DNA of 64,000 nucleotides from Anaeramoeba ignava BMAN (lineage: Eukaryota > Protista > Anaeramoebae), in NCBI GenBank assembly GCA_028826165.1, contig JAPDFW010000087.1, positions 124,001 through 188,000 of the forward strand, read 5' to 3'. Below, one piece after another: positions 1-8,054 of the stretch. How positions within the stretch are numbered: the stretch's first letter is position 1; each line of letters begins with the position of its first letter. The position numbers were made by a program, and so were the translations under genes. The notes under the pieces were generated by a model that saw nothing but the letters and a program-made list of their open reading frames with translations, searched no databases and had not been told where the DNA came from.

Positions 1-1900
1 TTATATCAATTTTATATCAATTTTATATCAATTTTATATTAATTTTATATTAATTTTATATCAATTTTATAAAAATTTTATATTAATTTTAAATTAATTT
101 TAAATCAATTTTATATCAATTTTATATTAATTTTATATCAATTTTATATCAATTTTATATTAATTTTATATTAATTTTATATTAATTTCAAATCAATTTT
201 ATATCAATTCCAAATCAATTTTAAATTAATTTTATATCAATTCTAAATAAATTTTATATCAATTTTAAATCAATTTTATATCAATTTTATATTAATTTTA
301 AATCAATTTTATATCAATTTTTATATCAATTTTATATCAATTTTATATCAATTTTATATCAATTTTATATTAATTTTAAATCAATTTTAAATCAATTTTA
401 AATCAATTTTTATATTAATTTTATATTAATTTTATATCAATTTTATATTAATTTTTATATTAATTTTATATTAATTTTAAATTAATTTTAAATTAATTTT
501 ATATCAATTTTATATTAATTTTATATTAATTTTTATATCAATTTTATATTAATTTTATATCAATTTTATATCAATTTTTATATCTATTTTAAATCAATTT
601 TATATTAATTTTAAATCAATTTTATATTAATTTTATATCAATTTTATATCAATTTTATATCTATTTTAAATCAATTTTTAAATCAATTTTTAAATTAATT
701 TTATATTAATTTTATATCAATTTTATATCAATTTTATATCAATTTTTATATCAATTTTATATCAATTTTATATCAATTTTATATTAATTTTATATCAATT
801 TTATATTAATTTTTATATCAATTTTATATCAATTTTATATCAATTCCAAATCAATTCCAAATCAATTTTATATTAATTTTATATCAATTTTAAATTAATT
901 TTATATCAATTTTATATCAATTTTTATATTAATTTTATAATTAATTTTATATTAATTTTATATCAATTTTATATTAATTTTAAATCAATTTTATATCAAT
1001 TTTATATCAATTCTATATCAATTTTATATCAATTTTATATCAATTTTATATTAATTTTAAATCAATTTTATATTAATTTTATATTAATTTTATATCAATT
1101 TTATATCAATTTTATATTAATTTTATATCAATTTTATATCAATTTTATATCAATTTTAAATCAATTTTATATCAATTTTATACAATCAATTTTATATCAA
1201 TTTTATATCAATTTTATATCAATTTTAAATCAATTTTAAATCAATTTTATATTAATTTTTATATCAATTTTATATCAATTTTATATCAATTTTATATCAA
1301 TTTTATATCAATTTTAAATCAATTTTAAATTAATTTTATATTAATTTTATATCAATTTTATATTAATTTTATATCAATTTTTATATCAATTTTATATTAA
1401 TTTTTAAATTAATTTTATATTAATTTTATATCAATTTTAAATTAATTTTATATTAATTTTATATCAATTTTATATTAATTTTATATCAATTCCAAATCAA
1501 TTCCAAATCAATTTTAAATCAATTTTATATTAATTTTATATCAATTTTAAATTAATTTTATATTAATTTTAAATCAATTTTAAATCAATTTTAAATCAAT
1601 TTTATATCAATTTTATATTAATTTTAAATCAATTCCAAATCAATTTTATATTAATTCTATATCAATTTTATATTAATTTTAAATCAATTTTATATCAATT
1701 TTATATTAATTTTAAATCAATTCCAAATCAATTCCAAATCAATTCCAAATCAATTCCAAATCAATTTCAAATCAATTTTATATCAATTCCAAATCAATTC
1801 CAAATCAATTTTATATCAATTTTAAATCAATTTTAAATCAATTTTATATTAAATTCTAAATAAATTTTATATCAATTTTATAAAAAATTTTATATTAAAT
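1..1900. repeat. 11-bp tandem microsatellite (TTTTATATCAA/TTTTATATTAA/TTTTAAATCAA), probably filling an intron of the radical SAM-reductase gene
   Basis: Degenerate 11-mer repeated continuously from base 1; ends shortly before a TTAG acceptor at 1937-1940 that precedes coding sequence. Confidence 0.9.
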
Positions 1901-1940
1901 TCTATAAAAATCCTATAAAAAATTTCATTAAATTTGTTAG

Positions 1941-4935
1941 ATTGGAAACTTCTTACCAAACGAAAAAGCTTTTTTTATTGGGACTTTAGGAAGAAATTTA
2001 TCTTGTAAATTCCATAAACATTGTGTTAATGAATTCCTTCCAAAAAAAACAGATCGCGAAATTGAAGATATTTATAAAGGTGATCCAATGTCTCCTGAAG
2101 ATATAATTAAGAAATGTGAAGAAAATGAATGTAGAATTATCGTTTTTGCTTATTATGTAATTCATTAATTTTGAAAGGAAAAAAAAAATTTTTTATTTTT
2201 TAACAAATTTTTTTTTGGAATTAAATTAGGAACCAACAATTTATAGTGAATATGCTGTTGAAATTGCAAAGTAAATTAAAAATAAATATAAATTAAAAAA
2301 TAAAAATAAAATTAAATAATTGGAATTTTTTTTGCTTTTACAAGACTTGCAAAACAAAAAGAAATCAAAACAATTTACATTACAAACGGATACATGACAC
2401 AAGAAACAATAGAATACATTTTCCCCCACATAAACGCAGTAAATGTGAATCTGCACTCATTTAGAAACTCAACGTATCAGAAACTCACAAACGCAAGACT
2501 TGCTCCAATTTTAAAAAACATTGAAAGATTTTACAAACTTGGAGTTTGGGTCGAAATTACAACCCCAATAACTCCAGAACTCAACGACAAGCAAGAGGAA
2601 CTGGAGGAGATTGCACAATTCATCTCATCCTTGGATCCAAATATTCCTTGGCATATTGCACCTCATTATGGATTACAAACTCCAATTCAAGAATCAATAC
2701 TTGAAAAAGCTAGAGAAATTGGCGAAAAAGAAGGACTCAATTTTATTTATACTTATAATTACAACAAATTCAGCAAATCAAATCCTGTCAATTCCGAAGA
2801 GAATAAACCGCAAAATATCAACAATATCATTTGCCCAAATTGCAGAGAAATCGTTGCCAAAAGAACAAATACAAAAACAGAATATTTGGAAATGAGTAGT
2901 GAAGGAAAGTGCGCAAAATGCTCACAAATAATACCAGGAATTTGGGATTCGAAAACAGAGAATCTATTAGTTCCCAAAATAGAGCCAAATTCACCTGAAG
3001 CTCAGGAGATTATTTGGGGTTCAGGAATTCAAGAACAACAAAAATCCTTTTTTGAAGATTCTAAATTTGATAGAGATCATCGAGTCTTGATTTTATTTGG
3101 AACTCAAACAGGAACATCTGAAGAATACGCCCACCAATTAATGAGATCGATACAGGAAGATGAAAAAGCTGGTGGTTCGTTTGATGTAAGAGTTGTAGAT
3201 CTTGATAATTATCCAAGTCATTTACTTTTGACAGAATCATTAGTTATAATTGTTACTTCAACTTTTGGAGAAGGACAAGTAAGAAAAACAAACAAATTCA
3301 TCTCTTTTTTTATTTTAAATTTTTTTTTTTTAACAAAAAAAAAGCCGCCAACAAATGCAATGAAACTTTATGATTTTATTAAAAATCAAGATCCAAAAAA
3401 AACTCCTTTTTTACTTGAAAATTTAAAATTTGCCATTTTTGGTTTGGGTAGTTCAATGTATACTGAAAGATACCAAAAATTTGCTCGATTTCTTGATTCC
3501 AGATTGGAAGAATTGGGAGCAAAGAAACTTCACAGACTTGGTGAAGGTGATGTGATGAAATCAATTGATGAACCATTCTCGAAATGGACTCAATCTTTAT
3601 TAAACAAGTTGATCAAAAAGCATGGAGCATCAAAAACTGGAATTGTTTCCAAAAAATCACAACTTGAAGTTGTCTTTGAAGATGAAATGAAAAAAAATGC
3701 AAATATCAAAGAAAAAGATGAAAAACCAAAAATTGATACAACAGAAGTAAAACATTTTTTGTTTTTTTTTTTTACAAAAACAAGACAACAAAATTAATTT
3801 CAAAATTTTTTTTACTAAAATTTGATTTGGAAAGAAAATTCATCTTAGATTGGTGAACAAAAAAGAACTTTTAAATTATCCTCCACAAGAGAATCGAAAT
3901 TGCAAGCATTTAGAATTCGAAATTATTGGAGACGAGAAAAGAATATTTGAATCAGGAGATCACATTGGGATACATCCACCAAATCCAATCAAATTAGTGG
4001 AAAAATTTGGGAAATTATTGAAAATTGATTTGAATCGGAAAATCCAAATCCATCCTTTCTGGAAGCACGAAGGATTTTTGTCAATCCGAGAAGTGCTTAC
4101 AAAAGATTACAATCTGACATATCCAGTAAACCAAAACAAATTGAAGTCTTTGTCCAAACACTGTGTGAATCTGCAAGAACAAGAAGAACTTTACAAACTA
4201 TCGAAGGATCCGATGAAATATGATGAATGGATGATTTTCCATCAACGAGGAATTGTTGATGTTTTTGAGAATTTCCCACATATCGAGCTGTCATTTTCGC
4301 GACTTTTTGAGCTTCTTTCGAAACAACCGATGAGATTTTATTCGATCTCGTCTTCACCAAAAATATCACAAAAGAAATTCACATTAACAGTGCAAGTAAT
4401 GGAAAATGGATTGTGTTCGAATTTTTTAGCGAACATGAAAGAAGGAACAGAAATTGAAGCTCATTTGCAAAAATCATCGTTTCAAGTTGATCATTCAAAG
4501 CCGCTTGTTACAATCTCAACAGGAACAGGATTTGCACCAATTCGGGCTGTAATTCAAGACAGAACTACAATGGACAAAAAGGAGTTGGGTTGGTTGAATG
4601 TTTTCTACGGAGCAAGAACAGCCAAAATGGACGCGATTTATAAGGAAGAAATTGATCAACTCAAAAATCAAGGTTTTATCAATGAAGTTTTTTATGCGTT
4701 TTCTCGTGATCAAAAGGAAAAGATTTATGTACAACATCTTTTGCGTAAACAAAGTCAACTTGTTATTTCTTGTGTGAATGAAGGTGGTTCTATTCTTGTT
4801 TGCGGACAAATTGAGATGGGTTTGGAAATTCAATCTGTTTTAAAAGAGATTCTTGGAGAGAAAACTTTTAGTGATTTTTCACAAACTGGGAGATTTTTTT
4901 TAGAAACATGGAATTCGGGACACGTCAAAAAATAA
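1941..4935 (+). CDS. 5'-partial fusion protein: AmmeMemoRadiSam (AmrS)-like radical SAM domain + CPR-like diflavin (FMN/FAD/NADPH) oxidoreductase
   Basis: Spliced exons 1941-2156, 2230-2270, 2345-3278, 3345-3746, 3835-4935 join in frame through GT-AG introns. AmrS-like motifs: FLPNEKAFFIGTLG-RNLSCKFH, MSPEDII, AYYEPTIYSEYA, TNGYMT, GVWVEITT..LND, IPWH, CPNC..CAKC..IPGIW. Flavodoxin motifs: LFGTQTGTSE, TSTFGEGQPPTNA, FGLGSSMY. FAD/NADPH motifs: RFYSISSSP, GLCSNFL, TGTGFAP, AFSRDQKEKIYVQH, VCG, LETW. Confidence 0.85.
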
Positions 4936-5068: not shown

Positions 5069-7021
5069 ATGGAAATTGAAAAAATCATTCGTTGCGCAGA
5101 ATGTAATGCTGTGTATCAAGAAAACGCTTTTAGTTCACCATTATGCCAACATTCGTTTTGTGGGAATTGTTTTATGAAGATGAAAAAAGAAGCAATTGAG
5201 AACAACCCATATGAAAATTCCAACGAGACTGTATTCATTATGGAGTGTCCAGTATGTCATGTAGTGGGGAAAATTCAAGAGGACGAAGAGATGTATGCAA
5301 ACCGAGCGTTAAGCATGTTAGCGAAAACATTCACGAACATGCCATTTTCACGGCAAGAAAAGTCGCAACTGTGCGAGGAGTGCGAAGCGGAAGAAGCAAC
5401 TGAGAGATGCGAGGAATGCGGGGTGTACTTATGCAAGAAATGCGGAGAAAAAACACACTCTTTTCAGGTGCTTAAGTCCCATCATCGAGTGCCTTACAAC
5501 TCGAAAAATCCTGAGATCTCAAAAGAAAACTTGACATGTCCGCTCCATCCGAATAGGATGAAGGAGTATTTCTGCACAAAGTGCAATATGGCGATTTGTG
5601 TCGACTGCATTGTTCTCGGAGAACATCGCGAGCACGATATCGTTAAACTTGAGCATCTCGCGCAAGGAGCAGAGACTCGAGTCAGTTTAGCTTTGACAAG
5701 AAACGCGTCAATTATAAATCAATTAGAATCCAAGCTCAGTAAAATCCGTTCTTTGCAGGACTCCCTTGGCGACAAGCTGTCCCGCACAAAGTTGATTCTC
5801 GAGAAGCGCTTTATCGAGGCTTATGACGCGCTTGAGAACCGACAGGCTGCCTTGGTTCAGGAACTTGACGACGTCGGTTACACTGTTTCTGCCGGAATCC
5901 AACGGTTTTTGAATTCAAATAAAAGACAAATTAACGTTCTCACTTTGTGCAAGCAATTCGCCCAGCAAATTATACAGATTAACAATCCAATGGTTCTTCA
6001 TGAATTCGAAAATATTCTTGAGAAAATTCTTTCAACTGAAGGTTTTGATGAGAAGGAATTCAACAAGTCGCAATATGAAATAACCGCCGAATTCGAATCA
6101 GTTGAGGATGAGACACTTCGTCTGGCAACAATCACAGCACCAAAATTCTACGGTCTTTTAGGCCACCAAGTCCTTGAGATCAGCGACCGTTATGAATTGC
6201 CTGAAGAAGAAATGGACTTTTTCAAGGTTGTCATTAAATCAGGAGGTGTTTTAACAGTCAAAGCTTGGAACGGAACTGATGGCGGTTGCATTCGACTCAA
6301 CATCCGCGACAAATTGGTAATCGAATCAGGAGGCAAAATTGATCTCACCGGCTTGGGTTATCGCGGAGGTGAAGCCGTGAACCAAGCCACAGAAGGCCGA
6401 GCCAAACAAGGAGAGAGTCACAACGGAAAAGGGGGTGATCAACAAACTGCCAACAACGGAGGCGGCGGTGGTGGATTAGGAACTGGTGCCTTTGGCGGTT
6501 ACGGTGGAGGTGGCGGCGGCTATGGAACCAAAGGAAAAGACGCCGGCGCAAATACTTATTCCAGTGGTTTTCATCCTGGTGCAACTGGTGGAGACACTTA
6601 TGGTGATGAGCAAATCTCAACTCTTTATCGTGGATCAGGTGGTGGATCTGGTCATCCTTACTCAAACGGTCAAACAAAAGGCAAAGGTGGTAACGGTGGT
6701 GGCGCATTGTTGATTAGAGCTAGAATGGTCATCAATGACGGTGAGATTCTTTGTGATGGTGAAAAAGGTGAAGACGGTATTTCTGGTACTTATGGTTCTG
6801 GTGGTGGCGGTGGAAGTGGTGGATCAATATTGATCTTCGCAAATCTTATTAATAATGGCAAAATTTCTGCTCTTGGTGGAAAAGGTGGTGTTAATACTAA
6901 TCCGGGTTATCAAGGTATTTGCTCAAATGGTGGTGATGGTGGTGATGGAAGAATTGCTCTAAAGGGAATTCTTAAAGGAAATCCAACAACTCCAAACGCT
7001 TTTCTTTTAAAGAAAAAGTGA
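5069..7021 (+). CDS. TRIM-like E3 ligase: RING + two B-boxes + coiled coil + C-terminal glycine-rich domain
   Basis: Intronless 650-aa ORF. RING CAEC..CQHSFCGNC..CPVC, B-box CEEC..CEEC..LCKKC..H..HH, B-box CPLH..FCTKC..ICVDC..H..H, helical region, then a GG-rich domain of ~270 aa. Confidence 0.85.
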   Translation: MEIEKIIRCAECNAVYQENAFSSPLCQHSFCGNCFMKMKKEAIENNPYENSNETVFIMECPVCHVVGKIQEDEEMYANRALSMLAKTFTNMPFSRQEKSQLCEECEAEEATERCEECGVYLCKKCGEKTHSFQVLKSHHRVPYNSKNPEISKENLTCPLHPNRMKEYFCTKCNMAICVDCIVLGEHREHDIVKLEHLAQGAETRVSLALTRNASIINQLESKLSKIRSLQDSLGDKLSRTKLILEKRFIEAYDALENRQAALVQELDDVGYTVSAGIQRFLNSNKRQINVLTLCKQFAQQIIQINNPMVLHEFENILEKILSTEGFDEKEFNKSQYEITAEFESVEDETLRLATITAPKFYGLLGHQVLEISDRYELPEEEMDFFKVVIKSGGVLTVKAWNGTDGGCIRLNIRDKLVIESGGKIDLTGLGYRGGEAVNQATEGRAKQGESHNGKGGDQQTANNGGGGGGLGTGAFGGYGGGGGGYGTKGKDAGANTYSSGFHPGATGGDTYGDEQISTLYRGSGGGSGHPYSNGQTKGKGGNGGGALLIRARMVINDGEILCDGEKGEDGISGTYGSGGGGGSGGSILIFANLINNGKISALGGKGGVNTNPGYQGICSNGGDGGDGRIALKGILKGNPTTPNAFLLKKK

Positions 7022-7206: not shown

Positions 7207-7410
7207 AATTTATAAAAATATAAAAAATAATTTCATTTTCATTTTCATTTTCATTTTCATTTCTGATTTGATTCCCATTTCTTAATCCATTCTAATATCA
7301 AATCTAAATTTATAAAAATATAAAAAATATTTTCATTTTCATTTTCATTTTCATTTTCATTTCTGATTTGATTCCCATTTCTTAATCCATTCTAATATCA
7401 AATCTAAATT
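7207..7410. repeat. ~100-bp tandem duplication that includes the last codons and stop of AK6
   Basis: TCATTTCTGATTTGATTCCCATTTCTTAATCCATTCTAATATCAAATCTAAATT occurs at 7257-7310 and again at 7357-7410, each preceded by the same (TTTTCA)n tract. Confidence 0.85.
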
Positions 7411-8054
7411 TCTCTCTAAATCATTAATCTCATTATTTTCAAGTTCTAAAATGATTTCTTTCTTGTAACTATCCTCTGCCTCTTCAAGAATAACTCCAAA
7501 AATTTCAGATTCAATATTATCAGTAAGTTTTTTTTGGTGATAATTTCTCTTAGAAAGTCTATCATAAAGAACAGTATTATTTGTGCGCAAAACAACAACC
7601 AAATCAAACCATCTTTCAGGAAAAAAATCACATCCATGATAATCCACAATATTTCCTCCCAAATTCATTTGGTTTTCAAGTTCATCGCATATTTTATCTT
7701 CATCAATAATATAGCATTTATATTCATCATCCCATCCATCGCATAAATTCTTTTCTTTTGCAAGCAGAGAAATGTCATGATGAACATATCCTGTTGATTG
7801 ACTAAGTTGTTGAGCAAGTGAAGTTTTTCCTTTTAAATTTACAAAATGAATTTTATATAAAAAAATTTTTTTTTTAATAATTTTGAAATGAATTTTGAAA
7901 ATAATTTTAAAAAGAATTTTAAAAAGAATTTTAAAAATAATTTTGAAATGAATTTTGAAATGAATTTTGAAATGAATTTTAAAATACCAGTTCCTGGTGT
8001 TCCTGTTATTAAAATATTAGGGATTTTTCTTTGAGGAATTTGTTTAAATTCCAT
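7357..8054 (-). CDS. AK6: Adenylate kinase 6 (Fap7/hCINAP family)
   Basis: Exons 8054-7988 and 7829-7357 give PNILITGTPGTGKTS (P-loop) and IVDYHGCDFFPERWFDLVVVLRT..LYDRL..RNY. Confidence 0.93.

Follow-up and report, generated by a model that had tools for sequence, protein, structure and literature searches.

A fusion gene on contig C88 of the anaerobic amoeba Anaeramoeba ignava (hereafter the C88 copy; protein KAJ5071532.1) joins an AmrS-type (AmmeMemoRadiSam) radical SAM domain to FMN, FAD and NADPH domains, in this order, and the existence of this AmrS-reductase fusion is practically certain. The gene runs from an exon at C88:123101-123292 to position 4935 of the window, i.e. the whole stretch of 64,000 nt analyzed here (C88:124001-188000). 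The AmrS half of the C88 copy is probably a pseudo-radical-SAM domain on a working reductase, as judged from the residues it has lost, and the true self-reducing candidates are three intact A. ignava paralogs and at least two proteins of A. flamelloides. The modules and the principle already have precedents; what appears new is the joining of a radical SAM domain to a complete diflavin reductase, as no radical SAM fusion to a complete FAD/FMN reductase was found in the literature searched.

The C88 copy has six exons that encode an open reading frame of 961 residues with no internal stop, and all five introns are of the GT-AG type (Table 1). The product matches NCBI KAJ5071532.1 in every residue, and a single residue separates it from the complete transcript ORF in EukProt. 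A sequence-only reading of this DNA had placed the gene at 1941-4935. Exons do lie there, but the gene begins upstream, beyond a long intron, and also contains the short exon 3, the length of which agrees with the unaligned letters of the spliced contigs. The same reading had correctly located the AmrS-like and flavodoxin domains in one uninterrupted exon, and the two further introns leading to the FAD/NADPH module. Intron 1 has the same position in all four A. ignava fusions, and two more positions are common to the C88 copy and the paralog on contig C60.

Table 1. Features of the C88 copy. Positions are those of the window unless the contig is named.
Feature	Position	Strand	Description
Exon 1	C88:123101-123292, upstream of the window	+	192 nt, 64 codons; N-terminal four-cysteine site
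Intron 1, 3' part	1..1940	+	Whole intron 2648 nt, taken up by an 11-bp tandem repeat; in X3 and X4 the exon 1 letters continue directly at 1940
Exon 2	1941..2156	+	Residues 65-136, AmrS domain with broken cluster motif; TIGR04337 positions 64-125; spliced contigs
Degenerate radical SAM cluster motif	1992..2015	+	R82-x3-C86-x2-H89 in place of CxxxCxxC; extra Cys at 92
Exon 3	2230..2270	+	41 nt; completes the GGE-equivalent motif, YYEP instead of YNEP
Exon 4	2345..3278	+	Remaining AmrS barrel, C-terminal four-cysteine ribbon (2832-2921), linker, start of FMN domain from 3069; single open frame matching TIGR04337 positions 142-339 (E 6.7e-33) and Flavodoxin_1 over its initial 60 positions
DxK replaced by NxH	2448-2456	+	Within exon 4
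Introns	3279-3344 and 3747-3834	+	GT-AG; skipped in spliced contigs of X3 and X4
Exon 5	3345..3746	+	Remaining flavodoxin-like FMN domain and flexible hinge; PF00258 (E 8.5e-14)
Exon 6	3835..4935	+	FAD-binding, connecting and NADPH-binding domains, flavin-shielding W954, seven-residue tail, stop; PF00667 (E 1e-33), PF00175 (E 1.6e-13); rat CPR alignment

In each of the runs X3 and X4, which come from two studies, one contig joins exon 1, 1940-2157, 2341-3278, 3345-3746 and 3835-3932 with the introns absent, and overlapping contigs extend the spliced coverage to 4889. The runs are unlabelled; we take them to be RNA, as they skip the introns and no second, intronless copy exists in the genome. 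The spliced contigs from exon 1 to 3932, together with the complete transcript ORF, demonstrate a single mRNA. An unspliced DNA contig of run X1, which may be the source of the assembly, spans 2322-3932 and thereby crosses the region near 2950-3080 where the sequence-only reading had considered a misjoin. A misjoined assembly or two separate genes would hardly be conceivable: the junction is crossed by DNA and by spliced contigs in two studies, the same fusion occurs at three other A. ignava loci and in a second species, and we found no point in favour of either. The variant sites between runs are few, four of the five being synonymous and all lying outside the AmrS domain.

The N-terminal half belongs to the AmrS family, as had been proposed, on the basis of its TIGR04337 match and of the AmrS tree, which places it together with the three A. 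ignava paralogs (support 97-98); the intron positions shared with them agree with this descent. An alignment-based structure model of the C88 copy reached a mean pLDDT of 87, with a low-confidence hinge at residues 559-593; because the underlying alignment consisted of intact homologues, the model leans towards intact forms, and single-sequence prediction gave a pLDDT of only 44. Residues 45-286 of the model match the PFL-activating enzyme (PDB 3c8f), a partial TIM barrel, with a Z-score of 20.7 and an rmsd of 2.7 over 221 aligned residues.

The radical SAM site of the C88 copy is broken. The first cluster cysteine, invariant in 273 non-Anaeramoeba AmrS sequences, is replaced by Arg (R82). Over the 56 columns that are each conserved in at least 90% of these 273 reference sequences, the C88 copy keeps 36, compared to 54-55 in the five intact Anaeramoeba proteins and a minimum of 46 in every other sequence. 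The absent elements include the whole DPIEKKPLxH motif and the Gln after the motif, in addition to the first cluster Cys and the Asp and Lys of DLK. The latter motif (DxK), common to the PFL-activating enzyme and kept as DLK in the paralogs, reads NxH, and the GGE-equivalent NEP of the paralogs has become YEP by an Asn-to-Tyr change. A two-residue deletion at YNEP was ruled out in favour of this substitution. Nor does the missing cysteine stem from faulty splicing or sequencing: the spliced contigs of both studies match 1940-2157 exactly, and the ORF in EukProt agrees in these residues. The C88 copy retains the barrel fold, the NG motif and the Glu of the GGE-equivalent, as well as all eight cysteines that make up the two outer four-cysteine sites. 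Moreover, the C88 copy keeps 64% of the conserved columns compared to 33% of the variable ones (Fisher p 4.5e-5), an excess that could partly predate the loss of the site.

The sequence-only reading, silent on the broken motif at 1992-2015 and on TYW1, a known radical SAM-flavodoxin fusion, had regarded this gene as a self-reducing radical SAM system. With the three-cysteine motif and other SAM-site residues lost, that claim does not suit the C88 copy but fits the three intact paralogs; the C88 copy very probably lacks canonical radical chemistry. Its residues C86, H89 and C92 could hold a metal cluster. An active non-canonical radical SAM enzyme, with a cluster on C86, H89 and/or C92 and a new substrate, is nevertheless improbable. 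Variant cluster motifs do exist in radical SAM enzymes (PMC8941971), the retained fold, NG motif and Glu of the GGE-equivalent would suit such an enzyme, and C92 falls in the third-Cys column when the sequences are aligned differently. However, neither alignment fills more than two of the three Cys columns, the DxK shared with the PFL-activating enzyme is gone, and the TIGR04337 score of 200.1 bits is below the curated cut-off of 220, compared to 349.3 bits for an intact paralog.

Profile search identified a complete diflavin reductase, in agreement with the sequence-only reading, with PF00258, PF00667 and PF00175 all above cut-off and thus FMN, FAD and NAD(P) domains in one chain. The CPR-type residues are present, including the S765/C918/E952 triad, the shielding W954 and the 2'-phosphate site S885/R886/K891/Y893, and the FMN phosphate loop is also kept. 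These motifs had been described as intact with a terminal acidic-x-Trp; E952-x-W954 does exist, but the Trp is not terminal, being followed by a seven-residue tail that the C88 copy alone has among the fusions. Residues 593-955 of the model match the CPR FAD/NADPH domain with a Z-score of 36.8. The best solved-structure match of the reductase is rat CPR (E 7e-70), the best solved matches being eukaryotic CPRs, and a search of the ESM Atlas returned reductase matches only. Neither Pfam nor NCBIfam gave a match to the NOS heme oxygenase domain, the N-terminal part being AmrS, which makes "nitric oxide synthase-related", the name given by NCBI, a misleading label; other misleading database names for these proteins are flavodoxin family protein and TYW1. 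The TYW1 family TIGR03972 matched neither the C88 protein nor an intact paralog at E 1e-8. Five FAD_binding_1 genes were found in the A. ignava genome, four of which are the AmrS fusions. The only other diflavin reductase is a CPR- or Tah18-like gene at C113:64187-65953.

Fast evolution of the C88 copy is confined to the AmrS domain, the terminal branch of which is 1.21 compared to 0.19-0.35 in the three siblings. The corresponding values are 0.51 versus 0.51-0.73 for the FMN domain and 0.91 versus 0.57-0.96 for the FAD/NADPH part. The long AmrS branch, and the finding of this copy in one species only in the data seen, would fit a duplicate decaying whole towards a pseudogene. Such a decay is very unlikely given the full ORF, the five spliced introns, the intact reductase motifs, the normal branch lengths of the reductase and the mostly synonymous variants. 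A different fate is that the C88 copy left the AmrS pathway to become a general cytosolic NADPH diflavin reductase, which would either supply electrons to other Fe-S or flavin proteins or act as an NADPH oxidase that consumes oxygen, with an AmrS vestige kept only folded. It would explain why acceleration is seen in the AmrS domain alone, why the whole DPIEKKPLxH surface motif was lost in addition to the cluster ligand, and why only this copy has a tail after the flavin-shielding Trp; moreover, just one other diflavin reductase is present in the genome. We regard this fate as rather unlikely, since a vestige could have been deleted, whereas a domain of 350 residues is kept whole, all eight outer cysteines included, and conserved residues are retained in significant excess.

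The three further A. ignava fusions, on contigs C104, C24 and C60 (KAJ5068588.1, KAJ5079341.1 and KAJ5074596.1, respectively), have an intact CxxxCxxC motif and a full reductase. In A. flamelloides there are at least two kinds of fusion, KAJ3437534.1 and KAJ3428373.1, both intact, but no degenerate counterpart of the C88 copy was found in this species; the C88 copy may therefore be species-specific. For the intact paralogs, the architecture and motifs are there to be read in the proteins. From the conserved motifs, the one-electron reduction that radical SAM enzymes need (flavodoxin, flavodoxin reductase and NADPH) and the precedent of TYW1, we infer an electron route from NADPH to SAM. They are likely to reduce themselves in the following way. 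NADPH would pass a hydride to FAD, which would hand on single electrons to FMN; the hinged FMN domain would then reduce the [4Fe-4S] cluster, and the cluster would cleave SAM to give the 5'-deoxyadenosyl radical for a substrate in the AMMECR1/Memo pathway. The proteins begin at the position of the prokaryotic N-terminus with no obvious targeting extension, which makes a cytosolic or nuclear site likely.

For the C88 copy, we favour a non-catalytic partner, the own reductase of which would feed electrons in trans, while the dead AmrS domain would be the docking part for a sibling paralog or for partner proteins of the pathway. As deduced from the residues kept and lost, a role of this kind within the AmrS pathway has a chance at or just short of even. 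The explanation as a whole, self-reducing intact paralogs together with a pseudo-radical-SAM partner, seems to us evenly balanced between right and wrong. A broader picture is more speculative, and we doubt that it would hold in all its parts: the Anaeramoeba family would be a self-sufficient radical SAM enzyme that, like P450BM3 among the P450s, needs nothing beyond NADPH and SAM. It would be the third component of a eukaryotic AMMECR1/MEMO1 pathway, retained by anaerobic protists alone, with the C88 copy as its dedicated non-catalytic subunit donating electrons in trans.

The full fusion was recovered in A. ignava and A. flamelloides; in Parabasalia and in an anaerobic heterolobosean, AmrS is joined to a flavodoxin without the FAD/NADPH part. 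When a full-length paralog was searched against 1.84 billion representatives, only four matches spanned both parts, two from Anaeramoeba and two of the AmrS-flavodoxin type. One of the latter comes from the anaerobic heterolobosean Creneidae sp. SRT213 (run DRR658064), and the other led to about 40 relatives, including proteins of the Parabasalia Trichomonas vaginalis, Tritrichomonas foetus and Histomonas meleagridis. Those of these relatives that were placed in the tree form one clade (support 100). Nested among the fused proteins is a parabasalid AmrS without flavodoxin (Tritrichomonas musculus KAK8893044.1, P0457), explained either by secondary loss or by truncation of the gene model. AmrS is found as a stand-alone protein in Trimastix, Paratrimastix pyriformis, Entamoeba invadens, Blastocystis, a further flagellate and three more assemblies, which we take to be Kipferlia and BaSk metamonads. 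All eukaryotic AmrS proteins that could be named are from anaerobes, which hints, within the sequences retrieved, that AmrS may be a member of the pathway that is sensitive to oxygen and missing from aerobes. Of the roughly 450 AmrS sequences collected, a non-exhaustive set in which clustering could hide some, no prokaryotic one is fused to a flavodoxin or reductase; the long prokaryotic members seen are fused to Memo, AMMECR1, inteins or other domains. One Logan contig (P0059) encodes a probably prokaryotic AmrS behind a membrane 4Fe-4S domain (PF12801), possibly another built-in electron supply.

The sequence-only reading had envisaged a laterally acquired prokaryotic enzyme that was then wired to a reductase, which is too simple. 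A recent transfer from a named prokaryote is unsupported, as the trees name no donor and AmrS is widespread in anaerobic protists. The spread of AmrS-flavodoxin proteins across Parabasalia and Creneidae, and of stand-alone AmrS in other anaerobic protists, argues against a recent bacterial transfer altogether. In the AmrS tree, Creneidae adjoins Anaeramoeba with moderate support and the deeper backbone is unresolved: FastTree groups most eukaryotic AmrS (96), but IQ-TREE leaves the backbone open. The data neither establish nor reject a common origin for all AmrS-flavodoxin fusions (AU p 0.315). With Anaeramoebae and Parabasalia as sister groups, the simplest reading is that AmrS is old in anaerobic protists and was joined to flavodoxin, or to the full reductase, before or around the Anaeramoebae-Parabasalia split. 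Independent fusions are possible.

The closest precedent is TYW1, in which, similar to the Anaeramoeba fusions, a radical SAM domain is combined with a flavodoxin-like FMN domain for reductive activation. The fused FMN domain of TYW1 serves the activation of the radical SAM cluster, and TYW1 has been called the first radical SAM enzyme to which a flavin domain is fused (PMC8941971). However, the flavodoxin of TYW1 is N-terminal, the FAD/NADPH module is missing, the radical SAM domain is of another family and the tRNA substrate is known. A. ignava has its own TYW1 (flavodoxin and radical SAM) at C100:58-61 kb, and its genome thus contains two unrelated radical SAM-flavin fusions. Compared to AmrS (TIGR04337), the fusions share the N-terminal four-cysteine site, the PFL-activase-like barrel and the C-terminal four-cysteine ribbon; they differ in the attached flavodoxin and reductase, never seen in the long prokaryotic members, and the C88 copy lacks the cluster motif. 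The FMN-hinge-FAD-NADPH module is the same as that of stand-alone CPR, NDOR1/Tah18, MTRR and CysJ, and lies C-terminal to a catalytic domain as in P450BM3, nitric oxide synthase and pyruvate:NADP oxidoreductase. In the fusions, the acceptor is not a heme but a radical SAM domain, and both a membrane anchor and a NOS oxygenase domain are lacking. The parabasalid and Creneidae proteins (e.g. T. vaginalis EAY03699.1) have AmrS followed by flavodoxin with an intact CxxxCxxC, as in the fusions; unlike the Anaeramoeba proteins, they stop behind the FMN domain and depend on a flavodoxin reductase from outside. No description of them was present in the papers found. The AmrS-reductase fusion is likewise undescribed in the literature searched, including the genome paper and its supplements, with most subscription papers outside the scope of the search; the sequence-only reading had also known of no description.

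On the basis of gene neighbourhood, Balaji and Aravind connected AMMECR1 with a radical SAM enzyme and a dioxygenase-like protein, and they predicted an RNA base modification (PMC2034487). An AmrS with the whole reducing system aboard removes the usual obstacle with radical SAM enzymes, that of finding the natural reductant, and the intact paralogs make the question of AmrS function testable. The C88 copy provides a natural inactive control, and the parabasalid AmrS-flavodoxin a natural half-way form. We know of no reaction assigned to the AmrS/AMMECR1/Memo trio, of which humans keep AMMECR1 and MEMO1. The sequence-only reading had pointed to AMMECR1 and Memo as genes to look for; the A. ignava genome does have four AMMECR1 and three Memo genes, but none adjoins a fusion, and such genes are common in eukaryotes anyway.

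Sets of three to four paralogs recur in this genome, with four AmrS-reductase fusions, four hydrogenase-flavodoxin genes, four AMMECR1 and three Memo, and two of the Memo loci (C1 and C60) have a similar neighbour gene. These recurring sets and similar neighbours may point to an old large-scale duplication. The four [FeFe]-hydrogenase-like genes with a C-terminal flavodoxin lie at C138:56 kb, C1:1684 kb, C127:96 kb and C104:1013 kb, and their flavodoxins form a clade of their own, separate from the flavodoxins joined to AmrS. Immediately upstream of the intact C104 paralog, a short ORF on the minus strand (C104:449918-450370) resembles, by eye, a bacterial glyoxalase/VOC protein. Within the window, the C88 copy is followed by an intronless RING/B-box/coiled-coil (TRIM-like) gene on the plus strand (5069-7021), which has an unrecognised glycine-rich C-terminal part, and by exon pieces on the minus strand (7357-8054) that read like adenylate kinase 6.
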